A stretch of DNA of 64,000 bases. Source: Macrostomum lignano. Its lineage: Eukaryota. The notes beneath the pieces were generated by a model that worked only from the letters and a program-made list of their open reading frames with translations, had not been told where the DNA came from and did not search any database. The DNA is taken from the NCBI GenBank assembly GCA_002269645.1, contig NIVC01001008.1, positions 1 to 64,000 on the forward strand, written 5' to 3'. Position 1 is the first letter of the stretch; every line of letters starts with the position of its first letter. Position numbers and translations under genes: made by a program. Shown in pieces: positions 39,762 to 64,000 of this stretch.

Positions 39762-42700
39762 TCATTTTTTGATCTCGCTTGGAGCATTGGCAGAGTCTGG
39801 CTGGTAGCCGGAGTTGTTGAAGTACTCGTAGTTGTACGGAGGCGGCTGCGGCTCCAACGGCTGCTGCTGCGGCACCGAGCTCGGGTTTGAGACTTGAGGA
39901 GGAGGCGGCTGTATCGAATTCGGGTAGGCGGCTGGAGCCTGCATCGGATTCGGGTAGGCGGCTGGAGCCTGCATCGGATTCGGGTAGGCGGCTGGAGCCT
40001 GCATCGGGTACGAGCCCGGAGGCGGTGGCGGATTGGCCGCGGACGCAACGGCAGCAACGGGCAATCCGCCCGCCATTTGGTTTCGGCGGGCCATCAGTCT
40101 GGAAGTTCGTTGTCGATAGATTCGATAGCCTAGAATGGAGCCGCCCACGACAAAGATTAAGGCTAGGAAAGCTGGCCAGTAGCGCCTAAAAATCAGCGTC
40201 ATTTCAGAGGGATTGGCCTCGGACCACTCTTTGATGTAGAATGATAGTCTATTTGGATTGTAAAACTTGTTGGCCGGTGTGCCGCCTTTTGGAGCGGAGC
40301 ACAGCTGGGCAAAGTTCGAGTAGCAGTCGGCTCGATATAGCGAGCCGGTCTGGTAAAAAACGCACGGACAGTCGCTTGTTCCTGAGCAGTACGATGGAGT
40401 CTTCGGCACGTCGTACAGCCTGTGGTGGGGTTGGTGCGATTTGCTCTGTAACTGATTTCTTTTTATTTATAGCGAGTTGTCTTAGTGACAAGCTGAGAAA
40501 ATTCGTAAGAAATAGCAAAGTGCATGGGCTTTCGGACTAAGCACACGATCAATAAAAAATTAAAGCTTTAGTTTCGGAAAAAAATTTAGAAGTGCCCCGA
40601 GACAGCTTATTTTGGAGATTGTAGCAGTGGTTCGAGCGTCGGACTCACGACTGAAAGGTCGGGGGTTCGATTCTCGTCCCAGTTGGAACAATTTGTGTCC
40701 TTGAGCAAGATCCTTAACTCTGTATTGCTTCAGTTCACCAAGCTGTAAAATGAGTGCCAGCATTAGCTGGGGTAATTGAGGGTGTATGTGGCGACCCCCC
40801 AGTCCTTGGACTGAACAGCCGTACGCAGCCTTCAGATGTGCCGTGCAATAGCTGCGGCTGAGCTGTCGGTTGCACATCTGGCCATTAGGGCCGCGCAGGA
40901 AATCGAACCGCAGTCCGCGGGGGTCGCGACACGAGAGTCGGGCGCGTTTACCGATAAGCTGCCCTACCCCGCTTTTTTACCCTCTGGTAAATAAACCAGA
41001 TAACACCACAAGATAACATTCGCTCAAACAAGATAACATGCCCCATTCCGGTTATGCAAAATGTTATCTTGTATGAATCCTGTTTGCGTGACGAAATCTT
41101 ACGTTTCCTTGTTTCAAACAAGATTAAAATAGGATTCATTGACCAGGTAACAGTCGGGTAATTCATGCGAATCCTGCAGGGAAACATCGTGTTATCCTGT
41201 TTGTTATCTTGTTTGTTATCCTGTCTGGCAAACAGGATTCGCTGACCAGGTAACAGTCGGGTAATTCATGCGAAAAAATCCGGAAGGCATTGACATCAAA
41301 TTTCGCAGCAAAGAAGCGTATAAAAAGTTGGTGCTTCAAGATTTTATGAGTAGCATCTATTTAACAGCGGGGTGTCATTTGTAAGCGCCTTATACAAACT
41401 AAACGTAGCTCAACAGGAACGAAAACTTCTGGAGAACAGCGTGGCATACGTCTGAGTTGCGGGAGTCCAGTTATAAGTAGACCTACTACTTATACTGTGG
41501 ATACCAATTGATATGTAGTGTGAGCATCTTTGCGTATATTTTGTTGTAAATTGACTGCATTAGTTTCTATATTGTTATTGAATTGTTATTTTGCTTTAGT
41601 TTAGTCATGCGTTTTTTGTGTACTTTTTCTAGTTGGTTGAAATCTAAAATTGTAAACAGGTTAGAGTTAGACGCCATCTGTGACTCAGCGGAGGGTTGAG
41701 TTTTGTCTGCGAACCCCAGCTTTGCGCGGTCAGCCAATCAGAACCGGCCTGGACCCTGGCACGCGGCAAGTTTCAATTCTACCCGGCGCCGCGGGCACAG
41801 TGCAATTCGGCTTAAGCGAGCGGCCGGCCAGACGACCACCACCCGGCTTGAGGGGGTTTTGCGAGGGTTTGACTCTGACTATATATGAAAGTGTGTTTTG
41901 GCAATCGGATCTCGCTTCTCTCTCCTTTCCCCGGTTTTGTCTTGTCCAGTTCCCGGCCGGTGGCCCGACTTTTCCTCCCCTTGTTGGTTCGCGCTTTGAG
42001 GCGTTTTGATTTCATCACCCCCGGTCCATATCTTTGTTCCCGCCCAACCGCAGTAGTCTTGTGGCGTAACGTCTACGGCAAATTCCTGTCTGAAGTCGTC
42101 GCTATCAAGCGCGGTTAGATAGAGACTGTCGGATCTGATCAAGTACGCGGCCTCGACCCCGAGGGCCCCAGTGTTACACTGAAGGGCAGTGCCGATAGAA
42201 CTTAGTCGGTACTCCGTTGAACGGTCGGTTCGGCAGGGCTCTCGTTTGAGAGTAGGTTCTGGCTTAGGCCAGGGGTTAGGAGTCTTCTCCGTGGTCCTGT
42301 GTTCGGTGCCTTTTTCTTCTTCAAGCTAAGATCCGCTTGTCAGTGCGTATATAATCATTATTTATTAACCGTTATTGTCGTTTTGTCAACTCTAGTTATC
42401 TGCGTCGTTTGTCTAAATCTTGTAACTCAGCTAATCAAATTAAACCGTCAATCAAGTTAGTTATTCTGAAATAGGATTATCACTCTCTAAATCTTTCGGT
42501 TTGTGTTCCCTCGTGTTCTTTATTTTCTTGTACTGTACCTGCGGCTATTGGAGAAAGACTGGTAGGACTCGCCGACCGGCGATAGGCGATTAGGATTAAT
42601 AGCTTTAAAATCTCCAAACGCTCCAAGTAGGTTTGTCTAGGGCCTAAATAATTGCTTACCGTGCATGCTATTATCTAATTGCCTATTTATCACAGATACT

Positions 42701-45700
42701 ACTGAATTGGTGATCTGCTGCGAGCTGGTGCTGAGTCGCAGGTCGGACCTGCTGTACTCGGACGCGACTCTGATGGCAGTTGACGCGTGAGCCCGACGTT
42801 TGAAAGATCGGGTCGCGCGCACGGAAGGCGATTAATGAGACCACTGACGGGGGCTTGCATTATATGCCGGCGCAATGGAACGACTCTGCATTATTAAAGT
42901 TAAATTAAATGGCGATGGAAGGCAGTTTCTCCAAAATATACACAGTTATAAAGAAACAGTAATGTACATACACACTCGATCGTCTAGCTCTAACAGACAG
43001 CGACGGTTCGCCGACAATCATTGCCAGATTGTACGACTGTTCACTAGTAATGTCAGCTGCGTCGATAGAATTGTCATTCGTAGCATAGTCGTCATCCGGA
43101 ATCAACTGGCTTTCGTTGATCGGCTGCTCGTAGACCGGAGACAAAGTGAATGGTGTATCATCTGATGCGCCGGCTCGCGCGGCGCTGGATTCGTTGCGTC
43201 CACGAAATGCCGACTACGCTGGAAACTCTTACATGATTGTCTTCGCAATCCTGTTTGCCAGCGGTAATATCCAACCGACTTGACGTTGCAGATGTCGCTA
43301 GTGCGATGGACGATCGTCCAACGGCGTCATCAACTGCGTCGTTCGAAGCAGTGACACCCTCCGAAAAAAGTGGCTGACAAGATTACCGACACTCGTAGTC
43401 TGTAACGACTACTCTTTTGACTTGTTCGAGGATTTATTAAATCTCGACAAGATTACCGACACTCGTAGTCTGTAACGAATACTCTTTTGACTTGTTCGAG
43501 GATTTATTAAATCTCGACAAGATTACCGACACTCGTAGTCTGTAACGACTACTATCTTCACTTGATCTGCTTACGGCTGGTGCAACTGCAAACGCCTTAG
43601 ACAAACCAATGGAGCATGCACCGAAAAAAAATCGGATTAGCGTCTATCTTAATAGGAAAGCTGCTTTGAATACTGGGCCAGTTAGAGCTATTTGGAACCA
43701 TGCCACAGTCTCCGTCTAGACACCCAGCTGTGCCAAACAATATGGTTGGCTGACTCATGCTTCTAAGCGTCAAATATGACGATAGAATCATTCAGCCCGT
43801 TGACACACTAAGCAGCTGTGATAGACTACATGCCAGTGGTAGTCAAACCTCTCGCACACAATCAGGGCGCAACAATTTTTCAATTGTCACCTGTACGGAG
43901 GATGGGCACAGCCTCACATTACGGACGCTACAGTGCCTCCGAAAAGCAGATCAATTCTCCTTGCGATTTCAAGGCTTTATTACCCCTCGGATTAAAGATT
44001 GACCCGCGTAGTCAAATAAAAGTGACTACACTTAGCAGCTGCCTTGAGCCACAACAGACGCGAGGATTGATTACCCCTCGTAGGTCAGCATTTTCAGTCA
44101 ACTGCTCAACTCTGATTCATCGGTTGAAGCGGGGTTCCATTATCCCTCACTGGTGGCCATACACCAACACTGCAGACGCTTTAGACAACCCAATGGAGCA
44201 TGCTCTAGCAAGAGCTAGAATAACGTCTGTCTTAAAAAAGGTTACCTTAGAACTGGGCCAGTAGGAGCTTTTGGAACCATGCCACAGCTCCATCTAGACA
44301 CCCAGCTGCACCAGATAATAGGGTAAACTGATATACTAAGTAACCGCGACAGACTACATGCCATTGGGAGTCAAACCTCTCCAGCACAATAAGAATGCAA
44401 TAGTTTGTCTGAGAGCCAACAAAGCTATCACCTGCAGGGAGGGTGGGCACGGCCTCACATTACGAGCGCTAGCGTTTGCTGATATATGACACTTTACCCC
44501 TCGCAGGTCAGCTTAGCAGCTGCCTTGAGCCACAACAGAAGCGAGGATTGATTATCCATCGCAGGTCAGCTTAGGAGCTGCCTTGAGCCACAACAGAAGC
44601 GAGGATTGATTATCCATCGCAGGTCAGCTTAGGAGCTGCCTTGAGCCACAACAGAAGCGAGGATTGATTATCCATCGCAGGTCAGCTTAGGAGCTGCCTT
44701 GAGCCACAACAGAAGCGAGGATTGATTATCCATCGCAGGTCAGCATAGCAGCTGCCTTAAGCCACAACAGACGGAAGACCAGTCTTATCCGTAACTTCAT
44801 TGAGATTTCGGTCAATGGGAGCTGATCCCTGTGGATTTTCCGGATCACTTGGTCTAGATCGCTGAGGAATTCCGACTGAACTCCCAAAATCTCATCCAGA
44901 AAATTTTCATTTGGAAAACTTGAAATTTAGGTCTGCAATCAGAATTCAGCAGCTGTTCCAGGTTAAAAATTTCGGAAAATCCAGCCGGAACAGCTTTTCC
45001 TTTTTCCCGAACTTTTGCAGGATCACATTTTCGGGAAAAGAGGGGCTATTCCGGGCCAAAAATTCTGATCCAAGCCTTCACTTGGAAATCAATTAATACA
45101 TCAGGCCCAGATCACGAAATTCTGGAAAAAAATTCTGGGTGAAAAGTACAATGGGTTCTTACAGACCGGATAACACAAAGGCATCTTGATTGAAATCTTA
45201 TTCCATTATCTGCTTTGCAAACCAGATTCGCATCATGTTATCCGACAAATTTCAGATTCACACAGGTTTCATACAAACCAGATAACACATAGTTATCTTG
45301 ATTAAAATCTTGTACTGTTATCTGTTTTTCAAACAAGATTCGCGCCATGTTATCCTGTGAAATTCCGATTCAAACAAGATTCGATCAACCAAGATAACAG
45401 AGAATTATCTGGTGGCGAATCTTGTACTGTTATCTGTTTTTCAAACACGCACTATGTTATCTTGTGAAATTCAGATAACTCACCAGATAACAGTCAAACA
45501 AGAAAACAAAAAATTATCTGATGGCGAATCTTGTCATGTAATCTGATTTCTAAGCAAGATTCGGGCCATGTTATCTGGTGAAATTCAGATAACTCACCAG
45601 ATAACACTAAAATTACCTTTTCACCTCAAACAAGTAAATCGGTAGTGAATCTGACAAGATTCGCAAATTATCTTGTGGTGTTATCTGGTTTATTTACCAG

Positions 45701-46550
45701 AGGGATAGGAAGGCTTCAGTGCGATTGCCTACTAAACCTAATGTACATGCAACTTATGAGTAATCGCAAACTTCAGATCGATCTTAACTTAGGCCGGTTT
45801 TTAAGTGCTCTTAGTGAGCCGCCACCTGCAAGATCAATCGGACACTCACGACATGTGGAAGGGCTCGCCAGTGAGGAAGTACAACTTAGGATTCTTGCCA
45901 CGGTACTTCATAACGCCGACCCAGTAGGGCCTGCTATCGGCAACCAGAGCCTCCAGGGTGCCTGTGCTTGTAAAGTCGATGGCGAGGTTCGCCTGCAGCA
46001 TGCGGCACAGCTCAAACGCCTGGTCGAAGGTGACCAAATCGTTCTTTGCCGGGTTTCCGTAGCAGACGGAGCCGCTGCTGCGCCATCCGTACGGGCAGTC
46101 GCCGCTAAAGATTGGCGCCACGGACAGCAGCACCGAAGACTCCATCGAAGGCGGAGCATCGGAGACCAGACGAGCCTCGAACCAGCTGCCGGACCCAACA
46201 ATAAGATGCCGACAGCCAACTGTTGACGTAGAAAAATTTTTCACCTTTAAAATCTGCGAATGGGTGGCGTTCCTGATGGTTAGCGAGTTCGATTCGTACA
46301 GCTGAAGGCTGTCAATAGCGACTGAGAAGCCGGTGCTGCTGCGGGCGGCGCTGAAGTTCAATGCGTGAACGAAGCTGGAGCAGCCGCTTGTGACATTGAC
46401 AGTCAGCTGGGCTGATGTGTGAGAGGAGATTCTCAGCTGTTGATAGCTCTGGCAGTGGCCAGCAACCGCCGTGGCAACGATGCTGAGCGCCGTTGCCAGT
46501 AGCAACGGGAACGCGACCGGTGAAAATCGAGGATTCTGAAATGCGGCCAT
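39762..46550 (-). CDS. CUB-like + C-type-lectin-like single-pass receptor with PPxY tail, copy 1 (452 aa)
   Basis: Exons 46550-45850 (donor TC|GTGAGT) and 40419-39762 (acceptor CCACCACAG|G), phase 2. Signal peptide; CTLD marks CPYGW..CY, C, YWVG, C.CV..C..C; TM; tail with (QAPAAYPNPM)-like repeats x3 and PPPY. Confidence 0.85.
40621..40890 (+). mobile_element. tRNA-derived CORE-like SINE
   Basis: Same family as 19004-19316; B box GGTTCGATTC. Confidence 0.85.
40891..40972 (-). mobile_element. tRNA-like head fragment of a second SINE type
   Basis: Minus strand GCGGGGTAGGGCAGCTTATCGGTAAA..GGTTCGATTTCC has A/B-box-like motifs but no convincing cloverleaf. Confidence 0.45.
41651..42600 (+). mobile_element. 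Possible solo LTR or other non-coding TE segment
   Basis: Starts TGTA, contains a TATATA and an ATTAAA, has no long ORF; no TSD or terminal CA identified. Confidence 0.25.
43376..43552. repeat. 70-bp tandem repeat, about 2.6 copies
   Basis: Units at 43376, 43446 and 43516. Confidence 0.9.
44503..44771. repeat. 58-bp tandem repeat, about 4.6 copies
   Basis: Units at 44503, 44561, 44619, 44677 and 44735. Confidence 0.9.
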
Positions 46551-46620
46551 TTCTAAGTGTATAAATTTAATGCTAACTCGAATCTATTTGAATAAACAGG
46601 AAATATAGTATACTGCTACT

Positions 46621-46762
46621 GCCTGATGGCTTAGTCGTTAGAGCGTCGGACTCAAGACTGAAAGGTCGGGGATTCGATTCTTGACTACTCACTCGGAACA
46701 ATTTGTGTCCTTGAGCAAGAAAGTTAACTCTGCATTGCTTCAGTTCATCCAGCTGTAAAATG
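46621..46762 (+). mobile_element. 3'-truncated CORE-like SINE
   Basis: Head and core homologous to 40621-40750. Confidence 0.8.
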
Positions 46763-47445
46763 CTAGCAAAGGGGTAAAATGTCAGACTGATTTAATAGTA
46801 TTTTGGTTAACTAACTTATTTAAGACTATATATAAATAATAGACGTACTCCACGTAGTCAATAGCCTAATAATGAAAAATTATTGCAACAAAAACTTCTT
46901 TTAATGGAGAAAAAATCGATTCATATTGAATTTTATTGCCTCGGAATGCTTAGTGTTCAGGTTATAAACTGTTGCAGATAAACGCATCCGTAAAAAATAT
47001 TTTTGGGTTATAAATGACTAGAAAAAACATATTGGGTTGCAAGCCACGAACCAGTGTTGAATAATAAAGTTAAGATTTACCACACAGATTTTTAAGGCAA
47101 ATGAGCCTTAAAAATAAAACTGATAGGTTATAAAAAGCAATACCAATTAGGCGCTCATACAGTCCTATAAAATACGATCTTTGAAGTCAATAGCTTCTTC
47201 GGATAAAACGGCTGGTTGTTGCAAAAAAGCGGCATTTTTAAGCTGGTGCAGGCGAGTGAAAAACGCATAAGCCAAACTAGAAATCTAAAAAGTAACCATG
47301 CAAGGTGCTGAAAATTTGAATAGGAAAATATGATTTATTGTGTATTGATCAGAATAAGAGCTCAGTTGCTTGTAAATAGAAACTTATCATATGTTATTTA
47401 TGACACAAAATTATGAAAAATATAGATTTTCATATTCATGAGATT

Positions 47446-49098: not shown

Positions 49099-49319
49099 GT
49101 CGGTGAGAATTGTTTTGTCCACAATGGCCTGTTCTTTTTCACAAAGCTCCACCTTGTTTCGAAGCTGAAACAACTAAATAAAAAAGAATGATAAACCAAA
49201 TACCAGATAAACATCAACAGAGGTAAATTATAGAAACAGCCATCACGGCAACAATTGTAAAGCGCTCCAATTCCGATAAAACGGTTCTGACTATTAACAT
49301 TCTCGTATGTCGATGAGTT

Positions 49320-52300
49320 TCACTTCTTGTTGTCGCTCGGTTCAGCGTCACCAGCAGCCGCCGAGTCAGGCTGGTAGCCGGAGTTGTTGAAGTAGCTGTA
49401 CGGAGGCGGCTGAGGCTCCGGCGCCTGCGGCTGTGGCGGCACGGAGTTCGGGTAGGAGACTGGAGGAGGCGGCGGCTGCATCGGGTACGAGCCCGAAGGC
49501 GGAGGTGGTGGCGAAGTAGCCTGCGTCGGATACGAGCCCGGAGGCGGCGGCGGATTGACTGCGACGGTCGACACGCCGACAGGCATCTGACGCCGGCGCT
49601 CCATCATTCGAACGGCGCGCATTCGAAAAAATACGCGAAAACCGATGGCCGAGCCGGCCACCACAAGGCCGAAAACGAAGAAAGCCGGCCAGAAGCTGCT
49701 GAACCGAAGTATCCATGCGGTTGGGTTGTCGCTCGTCCGCTGTCCGATATAGACTGAGATTAGCTGGGGATTGTAATACTTGGCCGGTTGGCCGACTTTT
49801 GGAGCGGAGCACAGCTGGGCAAAGCGGGAGTCGCAGCTGGCTCGATAAAACGAGCCGCTGCGGTAGAAGACGCATTCGCAGCTGCTGGACCACGAGCAGT
49901 ACGATGATGACTTCGATACCTTGGACAGCCTGTGGTGGGGTTTGGTGCGATCTCCCAGTTTGAATGTGACTATTACAGTTGCACTGATTCATATGGTGAG
50001 CTTACATGTATGCCTGTTTGCACTAAAATACAGATGGCTAAAATAACAAATCTTTGCAGGAACGGCTGTGGGCTTCCTGGCGCAATGGGCGCCCATTCAA
50101 TTGAATCCTGGGTACATATGAGCGTAATAGCAGCAATTAGTAACATTGGTAGCTTGCTATCTGGGGGGGGGGGGGGGCAGCTATCTAGGGATTCTTCTAT
50201 CCAGGGATGCTTGCTGTCTGAGGGACGCTTTCTATCTAGGGATTCTTCTATCCAGGGATGCTTGCTGTCTGAGGGATGCTTTCTATCTAGGGATTCTTTC
50301 TATCCAGGGATGCTTGCCGTCTGAGGGACGCTTTCTATCTAGGGATTCTTTCTATCCAGGGATGCTTGCTTATTTATGGATGCTTGCTGTCTGGGGGACG
50401 CTTTCTATCTAGGGATTCTATCTATCCAGGGATGCTTGCCGTCTGAGGGACGCTTTCTATCTAGGGATTCTATTTATCCAGGGATGCTTGCCGTCTGAGG
50501 GACGCTTTCTATCTAGGGATTCTTTCTATCCAGGGATGCTTGCTGTCTGAGGGACGCTTTCTATCTAGGGATTCTATCTATCCAGGGATGCTTGCCGTCT
50601 GAGGGACGCTTTCTATCTAGGGATTCTATCTATCCAGGGATGCTTGCCGTCTGAGGGACGCTTTCTATCTAGGGATTCTATCTATCCAGGGATGCTTGCC
50701 GTCTGAGGGACGCTTTCTATCTAGGGATTCGTTCTATCCAGGGATGCTTGCCGTCTGAGGGACGCTTTCTATCTAGGGATTCTTTCTATCCAGGGATGCT
50801 TGCTGTCTGAGGGACGCTTTCTATCTAGGGATTCTTTCTATCCAGGGATGCTTGCTGTCTGAGGGACGCTTTCTATCTAGGGATTCTTTCTATCCAGGGA
50901 TGCTTGCTGTCTGAGGGACGCTTTCTATCTAGGGATTCTATCTATCCAGGGATGCTTGCTGTCTGAGGGACGCTTTCTATCTAGGGATTCTTTCTATCCA
51001 GGGATGCTTGCTGTCTAAGGGACGCTTTCTATCTAGGGATTCTTTCTATCCAGGGATGCTTGCTGTCTAAGGGACGCTTTCTATGTAGGGATTCTTTCTA
51101 TCCAGGGATGCTTGCCGTCTGAGGGACGCTTTCTATCTAGGGATTCTTTCTATCCAGGGATGCTTGCTGTCTGAGGGACGCTTTCTATCTAGGGATTCTT
51201 GCTTTCTGGGGGTGTTTGCTATTTGGGAGGAATGCCTGCTATCTTTGCAAAGGCTTTATTTTGTTGTTTCGTTTTGTTGCTTTTAGAAAAAAAGAGATTC
51301 ATAGCAAACAACTTTGTCCGGGACAATTTTACTCCAATAAGGCGTTTTTTAAAACTGAAAACTGAAGGACTTGGTTCTTAAGAATGCTGTGTGCTCAGGA
51401 GTTTTGGAACGATGGCGCCGAATAGGCCTGTTGGCAACAGGGTGCCCGCAGACCTCCTTCAATAGCTCAGCTTCTCATCCTCTTTACCATTTCATCTTAG
51501 TCTGATTCTATCTCTGTCATGTCCTACGAGTATTTAAGGTATGCACATTAATAAGCACTACGAGCGTATATAAATTGGACTCCACACACATAAAAGACTT
51601 CCCTGTACCCGGCCATTTAAAACAATAACAGATCGAGACATTTGATGTAGTTTCCGTCACAGGGAAGCAGTGGCATATAAAGAAACGAAACTTCTACTTA
51701 TGTTTGACAGAGGTGGCTGGAGAGAAAAAAACACCTACGGCATATAGAAGGACTCGCCATTGAGAAAGTACAACTTGGTATTTTTGGAGCTGTACTCCAT
51801 GACGCCGACCCAGTAGGGCCTGCTGTCGGCAACCAGAGCCTCCAGGGTGCCTGTGCTTGTAAAGTCGATGGCGAGGTTCGCCTGCAGCATGCGGCACAGC
51901 TCAAACGCCTGGTCGAAGGTGACCAAATCGTTCTTTGCCGGGTTTCCGTAGCAGACGGAGCCGCTGCTGCGCCATCCGTACGGGCAGTCGCCGCTAAAGA
52001 TTGGCGCCACGGACAGCAGCGCCGAAGACTCCATCGAAGGCGGAGCATCGGAGACCAGACGAGCCTCGAACCAGCTGCCGGATCCAACAATAAGATGCCG
52101 ACAGCCAACTGTTGACGTAGAAAAATTTGTCACCTTCAAAATCTGCGAATGGGTGGCGTTCCTGATGGTTAGCGAGTTCGATCCGTACAGCTGAAGGCTG
52201 TCAATAGCGACTGAGAAGCCGGTGCTGCTGCGGGCGGCGCTGAAGTTCAATGCGTGAACGAAGCTGGAGCAGCCGCTTGTGGCATTGACAGTCAGCTGGG

Positions 52301-52442
52301 CTGATGTGTGAGAGGAGATTCTCAGCTGTTGATAGCTCTGGCAGCCGGTGGCAGTCGCCGTGGCAACGATGCTGAGCGCCGTTGCCAGTAGCAACGGGAA
52401 CGCGACCGGCCCGAGTAAAGAGGGTGACAGAAAATGAAGCAT
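49320..52442 (-). CDS. CUB-like + CTLD single-pass PPxY receptor, copy 2 (437 aa)
   Basis: Exons 52442-51739 (CC|GTAGGT) and 49929-49320 (CCACCACAG|G), phase 2; the join is in frame, giving ..YCSWSSSCECVFYRSGSFYRASCDSRFAQLC, a TM and a tail with PPPY. Confidence 0.85.
50171..51200. repeat. 51-52-bp minisatellite in copy 2 intron
   Basis: CTATCTAGGGATTCTTTCTATCCAGGGATGCTTGCTGTCTGAGGGACGCTTT, about 20 copies. Confidence 0.95.
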
Positions 52443-53049: not shown

Positions 53050-53636
53050 CCTTCGGACTACAAGACTGACCACTTCGGACACTGCAAGACTGACCCCTTC
53101 GGACACTACAAGACTGACCCCTTCGGACACTACAAGACTGACCATTTCGGACACTACAAGACTGACCATTTCGGACACTACAAGACTGACCATTTCGGAC
53201 ACTGCAAGACTGACATATTCTGACACTACAAGACTGACCCATTCGGACACTACAAGACTGATCCATTCGGACACTACAAGACTGATCCATTCGGACACTA
53301 CAAGACTGATCCATTCGGACACTACAAGACTGACCCATTCGGACACTACAAGACTGATCTATTCGGACACTACAAGACTGATCCATTCGGACACTACAAG
53401 ACTGATCCATTCGGACACTACAAGACTGACCCCTTCGGACACTACAAGACTGACCCCTTCGGACACTACAAGACTGACCATTTCGGACACTACAAGACTG
53501 ACCATTTCGGACACTACAAGACTGACCCCTTCGGACACTACAAGACTGACCATTTCGGACACTACAAGACTGACCATTTCGGACACTACAAGACTGACCC
53601 CTTCGGACACTACAAGACTGACCATTTCGGACACCC
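53050..53636. repeat. 24-bp minisatellite
   Basis: TTCGGACACTACAAGACTGACCAT, about 24 copies. Confidence 0.95.
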
Positions 53637-53751
53637 GACACTGACCTTTTCAGGCATTCAGAATAACAATAATTTTAAGAACACAGCCAATCACATCTAA
53701 ACCGCAGAAAGCCATCCAAAGATCGATGAGCACTCAACAACCGACCAAATT

Positions 53752-55812
53752 CTAAGCTTTGTCGTAGGCTGGCGGTGGATCCGAAGGCATCCTGTTGTAG
53801 GCGGGCGGTTTCGGCTCCATAGAAACGGCGCCCGGCTCGTTAGCGCCAATGCCAGGGCTGTAGGCGCCGAGGCCGTAGGATCCGGCTGGCTGGGTCGGAT
53901 AGCTGCCGGGCGGCGCCGTGCAATGCGAGTTGGCTGGCGCCGGCGCCACCGGCTGAGCGGCGCCGTCAGCGGTCATGGCGTAGTTGGCGGCAACAGGGGC
54001 ACCAGACCGGGAATTGGCAACGGCTCGGCGGTACCAGAGGTATCGAATGCCAAAGCCGATCCCAGTTAAAGCGGCTGCAACAGCCAGCCCAATAATCCAG
54101 TAGTAGTTGAACGTGAAGCTGGCATCGCCGATTCCCAGGCTTTTGTCCAGCGTGCTCAAATTGTAGAATTTCGCATCCCCGCCGGGCCGGCTGCTGCACA
54201 GGTAGCGCAGCATCTGAGCGCAATAATTCCGATAGAACGAGCCCGCGCTAAAGTACACACAGCGGCAGTTCCCGCCAAAGCAGGTGTACGTACTCGAACC
54301 CTTGAACGTTATGGAGCTGCTGGATCTGAAATTATTGGGTTTGCAGGATGGTGTGAGCTGCAATATGGAAGATTATTCGCTGCGGGCCACCCTGGTGCAA
54401 CGCCTTCCTTCGGAGACATCGTCTTATCAGCCAGCGCTGACGGCGATTCTGCCCGTTCCGCTGACTCCTGAGCACAAAACAAGCGCACCAATACTGAACG
54501 CAGCCACGCACTCACACACGCGCTTCCACAGGGTGTACAATAGCCCTGACTTCCCAATCGTCAGGCATGAACACTCTCTGTGCCTTGGGGATTGAACCTC
54601 ATGACTGTGAATCGTATTTTCACGCACAAGCACTTGCAACACAAAACGCCCAGTAGACGTCACTAAACTCCGGATAAAAACCTGCTGGTTTGTAGCACAG
54701 AAGCTGAAGCAACCCATCCATTGTAGAAGCTGTCACTATCCAGGAAAAACAGAAGCTGAAGCAACCCACCCATTGTAGAAGCTGTCACTATCCAGGAAAA
54801 ACAGAAGCTGAAGCAACCCACCCATAGTAGAAGCTGTCACTATCCAGGAAAAACAGAAGCTGAAGCAACCCACCCATAGTAGAAGCTGTCACTATCCAGG
54901 AAAAACAGAAGCTGAAGCAACCCACCCATAGTAGAAGCTGTCACTATCCAGGAAAAACAGAAGCTGAAGCAACCCACCCATAGTAGAAGCTGTCACTATC
55001 CAGGAAAAACAGAAGCTGAAGCAACCCACCCATAGTAGAAGCTGTCACTATCCAGGAAAAACAGAAGCTGAAGCAACCCACCCATAGTAGAAGCTGTCAC
55101 TATCCAGGAAAAACACGCCTTTGGAGGTGTCGGCCACACCAACCCAGGTATCTTGACCTGTCGGCCAGGTCGTCGTGCTGGCCAGACCCAGTACGTCGGC
55201 TGTTGAAGAGACAAAGCCCAGCGCCAAATTGGCGCGCACGTAACGGCAACCAACGGCAGCGTTGGTGAAAGTGGCCCGCGAGTTATTTGGATGCGCGGCG
55301 CCGTAGCAGAGACCGTCTCTGTACAACCAGCCAGCCGGACAGGCGCCAGTCTTGACCAGTTCAACGTCCAGCACGATGCTGTCGGGGTAATAAGAAAACG
55401 AAGAAGATAACGCACGGGTGAAAAGCTTAACGTAAAATTTGTTGCTAGGGGTGGCAAATGCCCGATAGTCAGTTTGATTATCCGTGGTAACCAAGGCCAA
55501 CGGAGCCGAGCCGAACTCGGGCCCGATGCTGAATACGGACAAGCGTTTAGACAGGCTGCTGCTGAGGCGCACGTAAAAGTACATCCCGCCGACGCCGTGG
55601 AACTCGGCGTGGCAATAGCTAATGTTGACCAGGTTCAGCTCCACGCTAAATCTGGTGGTGCCGTTGTAGGCTGAAGAGTTGATGCTCACTATGGCCGGTC
55701 TGCCTGTTCTGTGGGTGCAGCCGTAGCGGTCAACAGCCTGGCTGAGCAATGGAACGGCTAGGAGCAGCGAGGACAAAACAAAAATAAGAAACTGCAGCTG
55801 CCGGTGACACAT
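53752..55812 (-). CDS. CUB-like + CTLD single-pass PPxY receptor, copy 3 (434 aa)
   Basis: Exons 55812-55082 (GG|GTGGGT) and 54325-53752 (AATTTCAG|A), phase 2. CPAGW..CYG, WVGV, CRCVY..C..YLC, TM, PPAY x2. Confidence 0.83.
54505..54613 (-). mobile_element. Short SINE-like dispersed repeat; second copy at 55870-55982
   Basis: Shared CAATCGTCAGGCATG..ACTCTCTGTGCCTTGG..TTGAACCTCATGACTG; the minus strand has a B-box-like GGTTCAA. Confidence 0.55.
54698..55113. repeat. 52-bp x8 tandem repeat made of the copy 3 exon-1 end plus its splice donor
   Basis: Units every 52 nt from 54698; the minus-strand unit is GTTTTTCCTGGATAGTGACAGCTTCTACTATGG|GTGGGTTGCTTCAGCTTCT. Confidence 0.93.
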
Positions 55813-56241
55813 CGCGCTGTTCAGGCATGCATCGAATGAGTTGGTTGGCTTGGGGTTTCAGAAATCCATCACACACTCAAACACACGCTCACACAGGGTG
55901 CACACAGTGGCCCGGACTTTCTAATCGTCAGGCATGTGCACTCTCTGTGCCTTGGAGGTTGAACCTCATGACTGGGAATCCCACAATCCTATATATCCTA
56001 GTATCAGCAAAGTATAAAAATAGCAAATAGACAAGTTGTAATGCAAAAGCATTAAGTTATTTTTCCCATTTTATTGATAGACGATAAATATGCCTTTGTA
56101 GAAATGATATTCAGGATATCAGCAGTGCAGGCTCTCATCAAAATGCTATTGAGAAAAAAAGCAAAGCGATTGACGAGGCCTAATTATTAAAATTTAACGG
56201 ATTGTATAAAGCATATAAACTGTGTCATGTGAGAAGGTGCA

Positions 56242-57186
56242 AACAGGTGAGAGGATATAACAGGTGAGAGGATAGAACAGGTGAGAGGATATAACAGGTG
56301 AGAGGATAGAACAGGTGAGAGGATAGAACAGGTGAGATGATAGAACAGGTGAGAGGATAGAACAGGTGAGATGATAGAACAGGTGAGATGATAGGATAGG
56401 TGAGATGATAGAACAGGTGAGATGATAGAACAGGTGAGATGATAGAACAGGTGAGATGATAGGACAGGTGAGATGATAGGATAGGTGAGATGATAGGATA
56501 GGTGAGATGATAGAACAGGTGAGATGATAGAACAGGTGAGATGGTAGAACAGGTGAGAGGGTAGAACAGGTGAGATGATAGAACAGGTGAGATGGTAGAA
56601 CAGGTGAGATGATAGGATAGGTGAGATGATAGAACAGGTGAGATGATAGAACAGGTGAGATGGTAGAACAGGTGAGAGGGTAGAACAGGTGAGATGATAG
56701 AACAGGTGAGATGGTAGAACAGGTGAGAGGGTAGAACAGGTGAGATGGTAGAACAGGTGAGAGGGTAGAACAGGTGAGAGGATATAACAGGTGAGAGGAT
56801 ATAACAGGTGAGATGATAGAACAGGTGAGATGGTAGAACAGGTGAGATGATAGAACAGGTGAGATGGTAGAACAGGTGAGAGGGTAGAACAGGTGAGATG
56901 ATAGAACAGGTGAGATGGTAGAACAGGTGAGAGGGTAGAACAGGTGAGATGATAGAACAGGTGAGATGATAGGACAGGTGAGAGGGTAGGACAGGTGAGA
57001 GGGTAGATCAGGTGAGAGGGTAGAACAGATGAGATGATAGGACAGGTGAGAGGGTAGGACAGGTGAGAGGGTAGAACAGATGAGATGATAGGACAGGTGA
57101 GAGGGTAGAACAGATGAGATGATAGGACAGGTGAGATGGTAGAACAGATGAGATGATAGGACAGATGAGATGATAGAATAGGTGAG
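56242..57186. repeat. 17-bp purine-rich minisatellite
   Basis: ACAGGTGAGATGATAGA and variants, about 55 copies. Confidence 0.95.
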
Positions 57187-57744
57187 ATGCAGGAGTGAGA
57201 GAAATACCCGGGCTACGTAATAAGAGAGAACCAGAGGTCACTGCATAAAAATTATACAAATCAACAATTAATATGAAAAAACTGCAAATATTTTTGTAGA
57301 CGAAAATAAAAACAAGAATGGCGGCTAACTAAGATATAAAAGGCACAAGACAAAGGGTTAAGATTTTTGTTTGCCAGAAAAATACACAATGGAATACTTA
57401 AAACATTTGATCAAGTTCAGTTAAATATAAAAGCTACTTCCAGATCGAAGACAGCAGAGAAAGTTGACACGGGTGTTAATGCTATGAAGCAATAAATCAT
57501 AGCAGAGCTGTTGGCTATCTACTGTCTTAAGAATGAGCATTGAGGGATTAAAAATAAATAGAAAAATAAAGATTTCGTATTTGATTAGGGAAAATATAAC
57601 AATGCAATGCTTGATAATCTACACGTGTCCAGCCTCATGGACTGATTAGTTACAGCATGTTAATCTACCATCTACCTAACTTTATCGACTTGCTTTGTTG
57701 TATTATACACGTCGTACCTATCAATATCATCTAGCCTCTTTTTC

Positions 57745-58665
57745 TGTCTACCAATCTGTCTACCGATCTATCAATCTGTCTACCTGTCTGTCTAACTAGC
57801 TGTCTACCTGTCTACCAACCTGTCTACTTATCTGTCTACCTATCTGTCTACTAATATGTCTACCAATATGTCTACCTACATGTCTACCTGTCTACTAATC
57901 TGTCTACCTGTCTACTAATCTGTCTACCTAACTGTCTACCAATCTGTCTACCTACCTGTCTACCTGTCTACTTATCGGTCTACCTATCTGTCTACCTATC
58001 TGTCTACCTGTCTACTTATCGGTCTACTTATCTGTCTAACTATCTACCAATCTCCTATCTACCAATCTCCTATCTACCAATCTCCTATCTACCAATCTTC
58101 TATCTACCAATCTTCTATCTATCTCCTATCTACCAATCTCCTATCTACCAATCTCCTATCTACCAATCTTCTATCTATCTCCTATCTACCAATCTCCTAT
58201 CTACCAATCTTCTATCTATCTCCTATCTACCAATCTCCTATCTACCAATCTCCTATCTACCAATCTTCTATCTATCTCCTATCTACCAATCTCCTATCTA
58301 CCAATCTCCTATCTACCAATCTTCTATCTATCTCCTATCTACCAATCTCCTATCTACCAATCTTCTATCTATCTCCTATCTACCAATCTCCTATCTACCA
58401 ATCTCCTATCTACCAATCTCCTATCTACCAATCTCCTATCTACCAATCTCCTATCTACCAATCTTCTATCTACCAATCTCCTATCTACCAATCTCCTATC
58501 TACCAATCTTCTATCTATCTCCTATCTACCAATCTCCTATCTACCAATCTCCTATCTACCAATCTTCTATCTATCTCCTATCTACCAATCTCCTATCTAC
58601 CAATCTCCTATCTACCAATCTCCTATCTACCAATCTCCTATCTACCAATCTTCTATCTACCAACT
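57745..58665. repeat. Degenerate TCTACC repeats grading into an 11/15-bp minisatellite
   Basis: CTATCTACCAATCTC units at 58030-58665. Confidence 0.92.
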
Positions 58666-58721
58666 TCCTACCTGCCCAACTGGCTATCATAGGCAGAGGC
58701 AGTGCATTCAGGCCAGCCAAG

Positions 58722-60844
58722 TCAGTCGAATTTCTGCACTCCTTTCCAATTAGCTGCCTGCTGGAAGTGCCCAGCGCCGTAAATCTCCTCAGGGGTTGGA
58801 GCCGAAGGAACGGCAGCCCGGTGGACACAGCTTCGTTGTAGCTCGGCGGTTGCTCGTCGCAGTTGCCACCGTAATTGTATGACGGCGGCGCCAGCGGCTC
58901 CGGGTACAAGTTGTTGGAAATGACATCCGTTGTCGAGAAGCGTGGGCCATTGGCGGCGGAAATGGACCGCCGGATGGTCAGTTTCTGCTTGATCTTCGTG
59001 CCGACAGCCACCGACATAACGAAAACAAAAATGACTGCAAACACGACACCGACAATCCAGGCCCGACTGGTCTTGTCCTCATCCTCAGAGAACAGCGAAT
59101 AGAATTTGGAATCTCCGCCAACGGCGCAGCTGCATAGGTAGCTTTGCTTAGTTGAGCAGCTCTGCCGGTGGAATAAAGCAGTGCTCAGCTCTGTGTAGTG
59201 CACGCAACGACACTTGGACGAGTCACTGGTGCAGGACTTCTTAACGCTGGAGCTGCAAAGGTTAGAACGGATTTTGTTAGAATAGGGCTCCAGGTGGCTA
59301 TCAGAGGTTTACGGTGGATATCAGCATGTCACACCGGTTGGATATCAGCATGTCACACCGGTTGGATATCAGCATGACACACCGGTTGGATATCAGCATG
59401 TCACACCGGTTGGATATCAGCATGGCACACAAGTGTACATCAGCATGGCACACAAGTGTACATCAGCATGGCACACAAGTGTACATCAGCATGGCACACA
59501 AGTGTACATCAGCATGGCATACAAGTGTACATCAGCATGACACACAAGTGTACATCAGCATGACACACTAGTGTACATCAGCATGGCACACAAGTGTACA
59601 TCAGCATGGCACACAAGTGTACATCAGCATGGCACACAAGTGTACATCAGCATGACACACTAGTGTACATCAGCATGGCACACAAGTGTACACAGCATGG
59701 CACACAAGTGTACATCAGCATGGCACACAAGTGTACATCAGCATGGCACACAAGTGTACATCAGCATGGCATACTAGCGTACATCAGCATGGCATACTAG
59801 TGTACATCAGCATGGCATACTAGTGTACATCAGCATGGCATACTAGCGTACATCAGCATGGCATACTAGTGTACATCAGCATGGCATACTAGTGTACATC
59901 AGCATGGCATACTAGTGTACATCAGCATGGCATACTAGCGTACATCAGCATGGCATACTAGTGTACATCAGCATGGCATACTAGTGTACATCAGCATGGC
60001 ACACTAGCGTACATCAGCATGACATACTAGTGTACATCAGCATGGCATACTAGTGTACATCAGCATGGCACACTAGTGTACATCAGCATGTCACACTAGT
60101 GTACCTCAGCATGGCAGTGAAGCCACCAGCTTACCTGATAAATATGGTATTGTTCAAGAAGTACACAGCCTCGGGTTTGCTCTTCCAGGCGGCGCCAACC
60201 CAGACAGGCCGGCCGTCAGTCCAGCCGGCGAGTTGCAGAGCAGCGCCCAGAGTCCTGGTGACGTCAGCGAATCCCATAGCCAGATTGGCTTGCACGTAAC
60301 GACACGCGATAATGGCGGTGGAAAAGCTAGCAACTGTGCTTTTCAATGACGCGGGGCCGTAGCACCTGCCCGAGTGGAGAACCCATCCGTCCGGGCACGC
60401 GGTGACCAGGTGCACATTCAGCAGGACGCTGTCAACGGTGGACCGGCTGGAGAACAGTCTGCTCAGCGAGGCGTACAGCCGGTTGGACTTTGTTGCGAAC
60501 GATTGGTAACGAGACTGACTGCTGGAGGAAATCGTGGCGACCCTGGATCCCGGATAGTCGGATTGGATCCTTAGTCGAGAGTAGCGAGACTCCATGGTGC
60601 TGGCTAGGCTAACGTAGAAATAGCCGCTAGAACTGGCGGAGCTCACAAGCAGAATGTGGCACAGACTGTCCGTGCTGTCTATACTAAGTCTGACGCTAAA
60701 CCGCGAAGAGTTCACTGCCACAACAGTCGGTGTGGAGTTGGTCGTGCAGTTAAATGTCTGGCCCGACGCGACGGCGGCGGCAGCCAGAATTGAAGCCGCT
60801 GCTAAAAGTGCAGGCACAGCTTTGATGGCGGAGTTCGGCGACAT
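58722..60844 (-). CDS. CUB-like + CTLD single-pass PPxY receptor, copy 4
   Basis: Exons 60844-60135 (AG|GTAAGC) and from 59252 (TTTGCAG|C), phase 2. CPDGW..CYG, WVGA, CRCVHY..C..YLC, TM, PPSY x2. As written the ORF runs into the minisatellite (stop at 58571); adding one G at ~58818 gives ..AAVPSAPTPEEIY..KFD* ending at 58722. Confidence 0.8.
59315..60112. repeat. 23-24-bp minisatellite filling copy 4 intron
   Basis: ATCAGCATGGCACACAAGTGTAC with blocks of variant units. Confidence 0.95.
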
Positions 60845-60961
60845 TGCGCATTAGTCAGGCTGAAATTGAGAAACCGGTTGCAGGTAGATTCAGTAATTAC
60901 TGAAATTAGGCAGTATCGACAGCTTCTGACCGAAAACTCTAGCTAGGTTACAGGGTGACCG

Positions 60962-61748
60962 CAACTGGGTCTGTAGCTGGGTCTGCAACTGGGTCTGCAA
61001 CTGGGTCTGCAATTCTGGGTCTGCAATTCTGGGTCTGCAACTGGGTCTGCAACTAGGTCTGCAACTGGGTCTGTAGCTGGGTCTGCAACTGGGTCTGCAA
61101 GTGGGTCTGCAACTGGGTCTGTAGCTGGGTCTGCAACTGGGTCTGCAACTGGGTCTGTAGCTGGGTCTGCAACTGGGTCTGTAGCTGGGTCTGCAACTGG
61201 GTCTGCAACTGGGTCTGTAGCTGGGTCTGCAACTGGGACTGCAACTGGGTCTGTAGCTGGGTCTGTAGCTGGGTCTGCAACTGGGTCTGCAATTCTGGGT
61301 CTGCAATTCTGGGTCTGCAATTCTGGGTCTGTAGCTGGGTCTGCAATTCTGGGTCTGCAACTGGGTCTGCAACTGGGTCTGTAGCTGGGTCTGCAACTGG
61401 GACTGCAACTGGGTCTGCAACTGGGTCTGTAGCTGGGTCTGCAACTGGGTCTGCAACTGGGTCTGCAACTGGGTCTGCAACTGTGTCTGCAACTGGGTCT
61501 GCAACTGGGTCTGTAGCTGGGTCTGTAGCTGGGTCTGCAACTGGGTCTGCAATTCTGGGTCTGCAATTCTGGGTCTGCAATTCTGGGTCTGTAGCTGGGT
61601 CTGCAATTCTGGGTCTGCAACTGGGTCTGCAACTGGGTCTGTAGCTGGGTCTGCAACTGGGACTGCAACTGGGTCTGCAACTGGGTCTGTAGCTGGGTCT
61701 GCAACTGGGACTGCAACTGGGTCTGCAACTGGGTCTGCAACTGGGTCT
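60962..61748. repeat. 12-14-bp minisatellite
   Basis: CTGGGTCTGCAA / CTGGGTCTGTAG / TTCTGGGTCTGCAA. Confidence 0.95.
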
Positions 61749-62230
61749 TTGCTCCCTGGTTTAAATATGAAACAAAGCTGCACTGAAAAAAATCACAGCG
61801 TTATATTTTTTATCACAAAATATGAGCTAAGAAAGGAGTTTTTAAATGAAGACGGTAAATGATAGTGGATACATAAATTGTATAATAGTTTACAGACACA
61901 AAATGGTGTAAGATTCCTGGATAAATGTTCAGATGCAGTGGATATATAGGATAAAATTTACTATAATAATGTGCACCAATAATCGTTAATTAATTTTTTC
62001 CCATCTTAAACAACAGCGTAAAAGTTAAAATTAATCAAAAAATAGTTTACGAATATTCAGTTTGCTGTTTCTTGGAAAAATTTCCGACAAAATAGTAATG
62101 CAAATAAGCCACATTATCAGCAACAACATACCTGACATTAGGAGGACATTATAAAAAACCACTTGCATGTACAAAAAGCAATACAAAAGCAAAGGATATT
62201 GTGCCTTTTATCTGCTTTCGGGTGTACGTA

Positions 62231-62648
62231 ATCCATCCTGTTCTTTCACTTGGGAAATAGATTAGCAATCCATCCTGTTCTTTCACTTGGGAAATAGATT
62301 AGCAATCCATCCTGTTCTTTCACTTGGGAAATAGATTAGCAATCCATCCCGTTCTGTCACTTGGGAAATAGATTAGCAATCCATCCTGTTCTGTCACTTG
62401 GGAAATAGATTAGCAATCCATCCCGTTCTGTCACTTGGGAAATAGATTAGCAATCCATTCTGTTCTGTCACTTGGAAAATAGATTAGCAATCCATCCCGT
62501 TCTGTCACTTGGGAAATATATTAGCAATCCATCCCGTTCTGTCACTTGGGAAATAGATTAGCAATCCATCCTGTTCTGTCACTTGGAAAATAGATTAGCA
62601 ATCCATCCCGTTCTGTCACTTGGGAAATATATTAGCAATCCATCCTGT
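62231..62648. repeat. 37-bp minisatellite
   Basis: ATCCATCCTGTTCTTTCACTTGGGAAATAGATTAGCA, about 11 copies. Confidence 0.95.
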
Positions 62649-62790
62649 GTCTTCCTCATGGAGATCAAGCTTCATCGCTTTTTAGTTTGCATCAAAGAAT
62701 TAGACAAATATGAATTGTGAGTCCTGTCAATGATTGTTGTGAATTTTTACACTCATTCAGTTAAACGGGTTCATACTTCAAAAGTGCCGC

Positions 62791-63445
62791 CTAGTTGTTG
62801 CCTTCGGGCGGCGGCATCGGCTGGCTTGGCATCCCAGCGGCAGCTTCATACGGCGGCGGCTTGTCGCCAAGGTCGGCATCGGTTGGAGCGCTGGCGGCAG
62901 TGCCGGGCGGCGGCATGTAGCAGGCATTGTAGGCCGGCGGCATCGGCGCCCCCGCGGCGGCGGTATTGGGATAGTTAAAAGACGAATTGTCGTAGGCGGC
63001 CGGTTGCTGCAGCGGCGGTGGCGGCGGGTGCTGCTGCTGCACCGGGTAGCTGCCGGGCGGTGCCGGCGGCAGGTCGCTACGAGTTCCAGCGCCAGTTCCG
63101 GCCGTTTCGCGCCGTCGCTGAGCTGCCACAGCCCGATGGTAGAACGCCATCCGGGTGCCGAACACGGCGAGCACGGTGAGGCCGCCGATGATCAGGCCGA
63201 TGGACCAGTAGGGAAACGAGAAAAAACTGCTCGAAGACTTTTTGCTACTCAGAGTCCGGTCAAGCGTAGTGAGGTTGTGGAATTCGCTCTCTCCGCCGAT
63301 GCTGCTGCTGCACAAGTAGCGAAGATCCTTCCAGCAGTTCTCGCGGTAGTACGAGTTGAATCTGTAGATCACGCAGCGGCAGCTGCCAGTTGAACAGCCG
63401 GAGCTACTGGAGCTTGAGCTGTAGAACTTGAGACTACCGCTAGAG
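62791..63445 (-). CDS. CTLD-TM-PPxY receptor copy 5, last exon only; exon 1 presumably beyond the right edge
   Basis: Acceptor TTTTTCAG|C (phase 2), CSTGSCRCVIY..C..YLC, GGESEFHNL, TM, PPAY and PPPY. Confidence 0.82.
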
Positions 63446-63950: not shown

Positions 63951-64000
63951 AAGACAGGAAGCTGTTGTGCTCTGCTTACCTGACGAGAAACTTATTAGCG

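Follow-up and report, generated by a model that had tools for sequence, protein, structure and literature searches.

What kind of protein is produced by a tandem run of similar genes in the genome of the flatworm Macrostomum lignano? The genes lie in positions 1 to 64,000 of contig NIVC01001008.1 (assembly GCA_002269645.1), a stretch of 64,000 nucleotides that is hereinafter called the window, and an initial annotation, made from the sequence alone, had described between positions 39762 and 63445 five copies that combine a signal peptide, a CUB-like region, a C-type-lectin-like domain (CTLD), a transmembrane (TM) helix and a Pro/Tyr-rich tail. These limits are exact, 39762 being the last base of the stop codon of the gene c1 and 63445 the first base of exon 2 of the gene c5 in the models presented here, which were built by pairing long minus-strand open reading frames (ORFs) into two-exon genes. 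On the minus strand, c1-c4 lie within the window in full, together with the 3′ exon of c5. As the initial annotation had surmised, the array goes on: the greater part of c5 exon 1 and a sixth gene, c6, lie outside the window, and the fetched flanks show that the array ends past c6 at an unrelated TANGO6/RTP1_C1 gene. The locus is a six-gene, same-strand tandem array that extends past the window and consists of the following elements (coordinates above 64,000 are those of the record).

46550-45850 + 40419-39762, minus strand: gene c1, 452 amino acids
45850..46550, minus strand: c1 exon 1; signal peptide, CUB-like domain and about the first half to two thirds of the CTLD; donor GTGAGT
39762..40419, minus strand: c1 exon 2, stop codon included; CTLD end, GGTPANKFY stalk motif, TM helix and Pro/Tyr-rich tail with PPGSYPMQ, three PMQAPAAYPN repeats and PPPY
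52442-51739 + 49929-49320, minus strand: gene c2, 437 amino acids
51739..52442, minus strand: c2 exon 1; ATG at 52442
49320..49929, minus strand: c2 exon 2; CTLD end, TM helix, tail with PPGSYPTQ and PPPY
55812-55082 + 54325-53752, minus strand: gene c3, 434 amino acids
55082..55812, minus strand: c3 exon 1; 3′ end and donor within the first unit of a 52-bp minisatellite
53752..54325, minus strand: c3 exon 2; CTLD end, GGDAKFY, TM helix, tail with PPGSYPTQ and two PPAY
60844-60135 + 59252-58571, minus strand: gene c4, 463 amino acids, C-terminus uncertain
60135..60844, minus strand: c4 exon 1, from ORF pairing
58571..59252, minus strand: c4 exon 2; CTLD end, GGDSKFY, TM helix, tail with two PPSY; frame continues into a 15-bp minisatellite
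62791..63445, minus strand: c5 exon 2; CTLD end, GGESEFH, TM helix, tail with PPGSYPVQ, PPAY and PPPY
64698-63980 (record), minus strand: c5 exon 1; only the last 21 nt (63980..64000) inside the window
67864-66233 (record), minus strand: c6, sixth member, beyond the window; 518 amino acids, three PPSY, phase-2 intron of ~75 nt

Each gene has two coding exons, and the conserved intron position noted in the initial annotation is a homologous phase-2 intron at the same codon in c1-c6: in every copy the donor GT (GTGAGT, GTAGGT, GTGGGT or GTAAGC) comes after base 2 of the codon that succeeds F-x-x, and the frame is restored by a phase-2 AG acceptor. The spliced product of c2 is identical to GenBank BOX15_Mlig019758g1, and the c3 model equals, residue for residue, the RNA-seq-derived GenBank protein P0119, which confirms the c3 splice junction. 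P0119 is encoded by a second, near-identical array (hereinafter the homeologous array) that is collinear with the present one on contig NIVC01000350.1 at 92-99% nucleotide identity; such a second copy is expected because the M. lignano assembly is redundant owing to extra large chromosomes (PMC5730564). The c6 gene lacks an in-frame ATG, and a TTTCAG acceptor immediately precedes TCA CAA GCC AAT CTG..., in frame with the signal peptide (record ~67864-67900). The M. lignano spliced leader presumably ends in ATG, so that trans-splicing may supply the c6 start codon.

Several lines of evidence bear on the identity of the second ectodomain module. A profile of the ectodomain compared with PDB sequences matched CTLDs exclusively, with REG4 as the best hit (E=1.8e-4) followed by DEC-205, L-SIGN and LOX-1, and the Pfam Lectin_C model was reached below threshold in 3 of 5 members (at best 20.5 bits against a gathering cut-off of 22.6, E=8.6e-4). 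A first structure prediction that used the five window sequences as the alignment modeled the CTLD poorly (pLDDT 47) and was confident for the N-terminal domain only; AlphaFold2 was therefore rerun on the c3 ectodomain plus TM helix with an alignment of 14 family members, which yielded a model with pLDDT 75.8 and pTM 0.71. With this second model, Foldseek searches of the PDB retrieved the CTLDs of ASGPR, dectin-1, DC-SIGNR, langerin, LOX-1, NKR-P1 and CD69 at TM-scores of 0.6-0.75 and E-values of ~1e-5. Moreover, C133, C144, C164, C241, C254 and C262 (c3 ectodomain numbering) are invariant in the 14 aligned members, all of which also retain W-[VIL]-G. By its predicted fold, canonical cysteines and WIGL-type core, the second domain belongs to the CTLD superfamily, in agreement with the initial annotation, which had pointed to the conserved cysteines, the WVG motif and the lack of calcium-binding motifs. 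Indeed, EPN, QPD and WND are missing from the ectodomains of all 14 members, the WND position being occupied by F-Y-R or similar, and for this reason we regard the domain as a CTLD that is not a calcium-dependent lectin. Pfam scans of single exons gave nothing beyond noise-level matches to UL45 and NPCBM and a sub-threshold match to CYYR1.

The N-terminal module, in which the peptides quoted in the initial annotation are indeed present (ATPSNKFYVKL in c3, ATKSNRLYASL in c4), appears to be a CUB-type jelly roll. In the second model, the N-terminal ~120 residues, with pLDDT of about 87-91 across most of the domain, match the spermadhesin CUB domain 1spp_B (TM 0.71, E=6.7e-5), and the N-terminal domain of the first model matches the CUB domains of MAp19, enteropeptidase, Neto2, MASP2, Kremen and C1s, as well as other small jelly rolls. 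Furthermore, alignment by hhalign of 13 N-terminal domains with seven genuine PDB CUB domains (P=1.8e-4, probability 48%) places 76 columns in register, such that Y..g..C faces YP....C.W.I, and l.v.F faces l.l.F.tD. The domain has only two conserved cysteines (one invariant, the other in >=90% of the 14 members), ~30-35 residues apart; this pair aligns with the C1-C2 disulfide of CUB domains, and a conserved C3-C4 pair is absent from the 14 members. Some accepted CUB domains also lack one disulfide. Given the weak sequence evidence and the retention of only the first CUB disulfide, we call the domain a highly divergent CUB-type jelly roll, on the strength of the model, rather than a canonical CUB domain, a reading in keeping with the CUB-like region of the initial annotation.

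Each protein contains one strongly hydrophobic segment of ~19 residues near residue 300-320, which forms a helix in the model, followed by a cytoplasmic tail with 8-29% proline. The predicted architecture is therefore signal peptide, CUB-type domain, CTLD, stalk, single TM helix and Pro/Tyr-rich tail in type I topology, so that the shared one-strand design originally proposed for the array, with its signal peptide and TM helix, stands; the multiple alignment displays the CTLD cysteines, W-V/I-G and an invariant P-P-x-Y close to the C-terminus. The stalk motif GG(T/D/E)xx(F/Y)(Y/F/H), which directly follows the last CTLD cysteine in 10 of the 14 members, is specific to the family, and a second tail motif, PPGSYPxQ, recurs in c1 (~40090-40113), c2, c3, c5, P0030 and P0037; neither motif corresponds to one that we could confidently name. 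The portion C-terminal to the TM helix contains between one and three PPxY motifs in c1-c6 and in the distant paralogs P0010, P0026, P0030 and P0037, and thus in all five tails of the window, as the initial annotation had claimed. These ten proteins accordingly carry, in the predicted cytoplasmic tail, the [LP]PxY signature of putative group-I WW ligands. The number of PPxY motifs in c3, c4, c6, P0010 and P0026 exceeds the chance expectation, being reached in <=0.02 of composition-preserving shuffles of the tail. Because P0010, P0026, P0030 and P0037 keep PPxY at an ectodomain identity of only about 20%, we argue that the motif is probably functional.

With respect to the distribution of the family, c1, used as the query of a word-indexed search over 5.8 billion proteins, returned three proteins, all from M. 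lignano; the same kind of search with the family profile returned six M. lignano proteins only and hence is not a census. When the ectodomain profile was run exhaustively against 1.84 billion representatives with HMMER, 102 proteins were recovered at E<=1e-3, of which about 15 span both the CUB-like domain and the CTLD. All 10 of the two-domain matches whose names were checked belong to M. lignano and bear the label "hypothetical" or "C-type lectin domain-containing"; some are older gene models of chimeric structure. Two more of the two-domain matches, P0010 and P0037, come from transcript-sized, intron-free contigs of the RNA-seq runs SRR30276804 and SRR30276812; P0037 is 42% identical to M. 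lignano P0030 over its full length, PPxY included, and the 5′ ends of these two non-GenBank sequences carry no spliced leader. Ten other name-checked matches, belonging to molluscs, nematodes, echinoderms, crustaceans, hemichordates, corals and frogs, are generic CTLD proteins, mostly multi-CTLD and mannose-receptor-like, indicating that the searched database samples animals broadly. Within M. lignano, at least 12 paralog lineages (clusters below 50% identity) can be delineated, with proteins of about 430-520 amino acids; P0028 and P0094 form another adjacent gene pair, present on two contigs. The family thus is apparently lineage-restricted and unnamed, having been detected only in M. lignano and in the one RNA-seq sample to which the two runs belong.

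The initial annotation had itself named three findings that would overturn it, namely clear orthology to an already characterized family, no CUB or CTLD fold in predicted structures, and no expression; each was looked for and none was found. No characterized ortholog emerged from the word-indexed and HMMER searches or the name checks, in line with the original statement that no named family was recognizable, and both folds are present in the predicted structures as detailed above. As for expression, the GenBank annotation of the assembly was built solely from RNA-seq transcript assemblies (PMC5730564) and includes models for c1-c6, from which it follows that these genes are transcribed in whole animals; the intron-free RNA-seq contigs P0010 and P0037 show that relatives are transcribed too. 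We also considered Mlig-tuf2, an intestine-enriched CLECT gene with an RNAi fasting phenotype (PMC12732829), as a possible family member and rejected it: its transcript encodes a secreted protein with an N-terminal CTLD followed by Ig domains and hence is unrelated.

None of the closest known systems, to which we compared the family, shares the whole CUB-CTLD-TM-PPxY architecture. The group V CTLD receptors (NK receptors, LOX-1, dectin-1) likewise possess one CTLD and a single membrane pass, and likewise have lost EPN, QPD and WND while keeping the fold, disulfides and WIGL core; however, they are type II proteins that signal via ITAM, ITIM or hemITAM motifs, whereas the M. lignano proteins are type I and carry PPxY. 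Layilin, chondrolectin and CD302 are type I single-CTLD proteins but lack both a CUB domain and a PPxY tail. Orthology to any of these non-calcium or single-CTLD receptors is not detectable, the Pfam Lectin_C matches being sub-threshold. Attractin/Mahogany (CTLD group XI) is a type I protein with a CUB and CTLD ectodomain and a tail functionally linked to the ubiquitin ligase MGRN1; it differs in its size of ~1,400 amino acids, its EGF, kelch, PSI and laminin-EGF modules, its non-PPxY tail and its conservation across animals, as opposed to the smaller and restricted M. lignano proteins, and the HMMER search of 1.84 billion representatives gave no sequence match to it. The PY adaptors (the Shisa-like proteins including CYYR1, WBP1/VOPP1 and TMEM92; PRRG1-4, LDLRAD3 and Commissureless) resemble the family in type I topology and in the succession of a TM helix and a Pro-rich tail with 1-3 PPxY, but have tiny cysteine-rich, Gla or LDLa ectodomains in place of the CUB-like domain and CTLD; no six-cysteine module of the Shisa-like/CYYR1 kind was found in the family, and the Pfam CYYR1 model is matched below the gathering score by c4 exon 2 only. 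Nematode CLEC proteins likewise combine CUB and CTLD in one polypeptide and have undergone large lineage-specific tandem expansions, but are mostly secreted, often multi-CTLD and devoid of a TM helix and PPxY tail; Steinernema CTLD proteins are among our distant matches, in alignments that cover the CTLD only. Finally, NETO1/2, neuropilins, Kremen, LRP3/LRP12 and DCBLD2 are type I proteins with a membrane-distal CUB, but pair it with LDLa, FA58C or kringle/WSC modules rather than a CTLD, and their CUB domains match Pfam CUB clearly. The architecture is accordingly new as a combination of well-known parts, encoded by genes already present in GenBank as unnamed hypothetical proteins.

Given these features, the best explanation, to which we assign about an even chance of being correct, is that the array encodes lineage-restricted type I receptors in which a CUB-CTLD ectodomain is coupled to a PPxY tail that docks NEDD4-family ligases and thereby triggers ubiquitin-dependent endocytosis. 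Under this scheme, the ectodomain would recognize either a protein or some non-canonical ligand independently of calcium, the WW domains of NEDD4-family HECT ubiquitin ligases would be engaged by the PPxY motifs, as can be expected from what is known of PPxY-WW recognition, and ubiquitin-dependent endocytosis with lysosomal sorting would set the occupancy or abundance of both the receptor and whatever it has bound. Recruitment of NEDD4-type ligases is the way in which PPxY tails work in other single-pass proteins, such as Shisa-like/CYYR1, PRRG, LDLRAD3 and Commissureless. Roles in immunity or gamete recognition, as well as ubiquitin-dependent endocytosis itself, all suggested in the initial annotation, are plausible but putative readings of the motifs. 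A number of observations speak against the proposed scheme. On the ectodomain side, generic jelly rolls (PliG, cupins) score similarly to CUB domains with the first model, the N-terminal domain has no Pfam CUB match (one member matches CUB_M02D8_5_3rd at E=0.017), and its profile retrieved nothing among PDB sequences, so that the CUB assignment comes from the predicted fold together with the weak profile match. On the tail side, the single PPxY of c1, c2, P0030 and P0037 could arise from the proline-rich composition by itself (shuffle fraction 0.2-0.4), and P0028, P0071, P0094 and P0113, which have a very short tail or none, lack PPxY, so that the predicted tail function is not universal in the family. 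Furthermore, ten BOX15 gene numbers are absent from the searchable literature, four of them also from the supplements of the genome paper. The tails, as read from the sequences, are also poor in lysine, which would suit an adaptor and a cargo alike.

That last property is what would be expected if ubiquitin were placed on a partner, and it leads to an unlikely but credible alternative, namely that the proteins are cis-acting trafficking adaptors which contact a membrane partner by way of their TM region or CUB-CTLD ectodomain and, like Shisa, NDFIP or Commissureless, bring in a NEDD4-type ligase through PPxY and lower the surface level of that partner. The CUB domains of NETO proteins and neuropilins act as auxiliary subunits, and Neto2-GluK2 structures are among the Foldseek matches; moreover, the TM-plus-PY-tail half of c4 matches Pfam CYYR1 (E=1.9e-4, 22.3 bits against a cut-off of 31). 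However, this match is below threshold, arises in one of the nine exon translations scanned and is plausibly compositional, and the juxtamembrane six-cysteine module of the Shisa-like proteins is missing. The PPxY tails could also signal through WW proteins other than ligases, of the Yorkie/YAP, MAGI or Kibra type, which would make the proteins adhesion or contact receptors for growth or polarity. PPxY is recognized generically by group-I WW domains, similar tails in the vertebrate PRRG proteins are bound not only by NEDD4 but also by YAP and MAGI, and the conservation of a further tail motif, PPGSYPxQ, hints that the tails dock to more than a single partner; nevertheless, the sequence does not discriminate between WW partners, and we hold this possibility to be distinctly unlikely.

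The initial annotation had favored a diversifying recognition family, and a rapidly diversifying set of immune, microbial or gamete receptors under positive selection would indeed be compatible with the tandem expansion into at least 12 lineages below 50% identity, with the lineage restriction and with the infection-induced nematode CUB+CTLD "clec" genes. The claim that copies 3-5 are highly diverged from copies 1-2 is accurate: identity of c1/c2 to c3-c6 is 14-26% in the CUB-like domain, 32-40% in the CTLD and 18-42% in the tail, compared with 29-45% in both ectodomain modules among c3-c6, and of the ordered domains it is the CUB-like one that differs most between paralogs (14-38% identity). 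The tests applied here, however, do not support diversification. Synonymous sites of the paralogs are saturated (pS about 0.65-0.8), so that the duplicates are ancient and no recent burst is apparent; pairwise dN/dS is 0.2-0.5 where dS can be estimated and below 1 in every estimable domain apart from three segments of 18-32 codons, such pairwise averages being insensitive to positive selection at a few sites. The paralogs are thus old and under purifying selection on average. Furthermore, exon 1 of c1 and c2 is 95.4% identical at the nucleotide level exactly over 45842-46520 versus 51731-52409, against 67% in exon 2 (dS 0.77, omega 0.37), and c2 exon 1 is closer still (98.5%) to exon 1 of the homeologous c1, from which we read an exon-limited gene conversion that homogenizes the CUB-like domain and the N-terminal half of the CTLD of c1 and c2, a case of concerted evolution and thus the reverse of diversification. 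Copies of the present and homeologous arrays differ by 0-42 substitutions with no excess of replacement changes (omega 0.56-0.75), a comparison almost powerless at so few differences and confounded by the c1/c2 conversion. Diversification under positive selection therefore seems improbable. The notion that the array is non-functional, consisting of pseudogenes or of annotation or assembly artefacts, could draw on a decayed fragment at 38035-38220, on the c4 frame that enters a minisatellite and the c3 donor that lies within one, and on the redundancy of the assembly (PMC5730564). It is very hard to reconcile with complete copies whose frames are all open and which retain canonical splice sites and conserved cysteines, with dN/dS below 1, with models (c2, c3) that equal RNA-seq-derived GenBank proteins exactly and with a collinear array on a second contig at 92-99% identity, and we consider it only barely plausible.

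If the receptor mechanism proposed here is true, the family would represent a compact lectin-fold surface receptor whose output is the recruitment of WW-domain proteins or ubiquitin ligases, and the availability of transgenesis and RNAi in M. lignano makes this mechanism directly testable. A bolder extension, which we regard as rather doubtful, would be a Macrostomum-specific receptor class in which a CUB/lectin-fold ectodomain is wired to ubiquitin/WW scaffolds instead of kinase, ITAM or TIR modules, with a family of at least 12 lineages, arranged in tandem arrays, serving the recognition of microbes, food or mating partners. The CUB-CTLD array is currently an annotation-level finding; it adds a case of lineage-specific receptor expansion in Platyhelminthes, and the locus offers a clean example of single-exon gene conversion as well as an example of minisatellites that invade coding sequence and a splice junction while the gene survives.

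The window as a whole is very rich in minisatellites. Nearly all introns and spacers of the array carry a long minisatellite, with units of 12-52 bp in 8-67 copies, and these repeats create long spurious ORFs on both strands; 15% of the M. lignano genome consists of simple and tandem repeats (PMC5730564). The repeats in and around the genes are as follows, with no strand assigned.

54697..55115: 52-bp minisatellite, 8 copies, spanning the c3 exon 1/intron boundary; ~13 units in the homeologous array
39909..40007: in-frame 30-bp repeat, 3.3 copies, in the c1 cytoplasmic tail (PMQAPAAYPN x3); two units in the homeologous protein P0001
47448-49099, 50195-51200, 53057-53634, 56242-57189, 58040-58667, 59320-60116, 60961-61748, 62230-62648 and 63564-63956: minisatellites in the array

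Each 52-bp unit at c3 repeats the last 32 nt of exon 1 together with the GTGGGT donor. Splicing from any later unit would bring in an in-frame TAG, so that the frame is preserved by the first donor only, and the RNA-seq-derived P0119 shows that this donor is the one used. The GenBank product of c1 is 10 amino acids shorter than the present model, even allowing for its later start, a difference that may reflect the copy number of PMQAPAAYPN. At 58571-58830, the c4 frame enters a 15-bp minisatellite and ends as (RRLVD)n; moving the frame by one base after ...NEAVSTG yields ...AAVPSAPTPEEIYGAGHFQQAANWKGVQKFD*, in agreement with the older gene model P0007. The discrepancy points to a putative 1-nt indel between assemblies or alleles, so that the C-terminus of c4 is uncertain; both PPSY motifs lie upstream of the ambiguity and are unaffected. 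The c1 intron measures ~5.4 kb as against ~0.8 kb in the homeologous copy, where ~5 kb with three minisatellites (40738-45706) is absent. Just outside this block, on the exon 2 side, a tRNA-like stretch is seen near 40600-40700, for which neither ARAGORN nor Rfam makes a call; over the interval 36-64 kb, scans for tRNAs and Rfam families likewise returned no hit.

Downstream of c1, in AT-richer DNA whose flanks occur on the second contig too, lies the decayed copy mentioned above.

38035..38220, minus strand: decayed family fragment, tblastn E ~1e-5, 38-42% identity to c1/c2 residues 169-234

This relic is equivalent to the end of exon 1 and translates as ...YWVGVVSQNRRLYFINGPPFYQT* / ...CHMYMYNLLQASHYQPYWVGVVSQNRRLYFINGPPFYQT*; a tblastn scan downstream of c1 found no partner exon 2 for it. 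The other genes of the window are unrelated and ordinary, encoding a GH38 alpha-mannosidase, a sulfide:quinone-oxidoreductase-like flavoprotein, a DXD glycosyltransferase, an LCAT-like lipase and an RRM protein. Minisatellites at 2025-2824 and 23334-24429 abut or enter exons of the alpha-mannosidase and LCAT-like genes and extend their ORFs with repeat-encoded peptide.

Among the UniProt models from the older assembly (P0003, P0004, P0005, P0008, P0009 and P0013), several are chimeric: neighboring array genes are fused (c5-c4-c3, c3-c2-c1), the TANGO6 neighbor is joined to c6, or a family member is joined to a retrotransposon gag/pol gene. The UniProt names DDE Tnp4, LCCL and RTP1_C1 attached to such models are misleading for the CUB-CTLD family.

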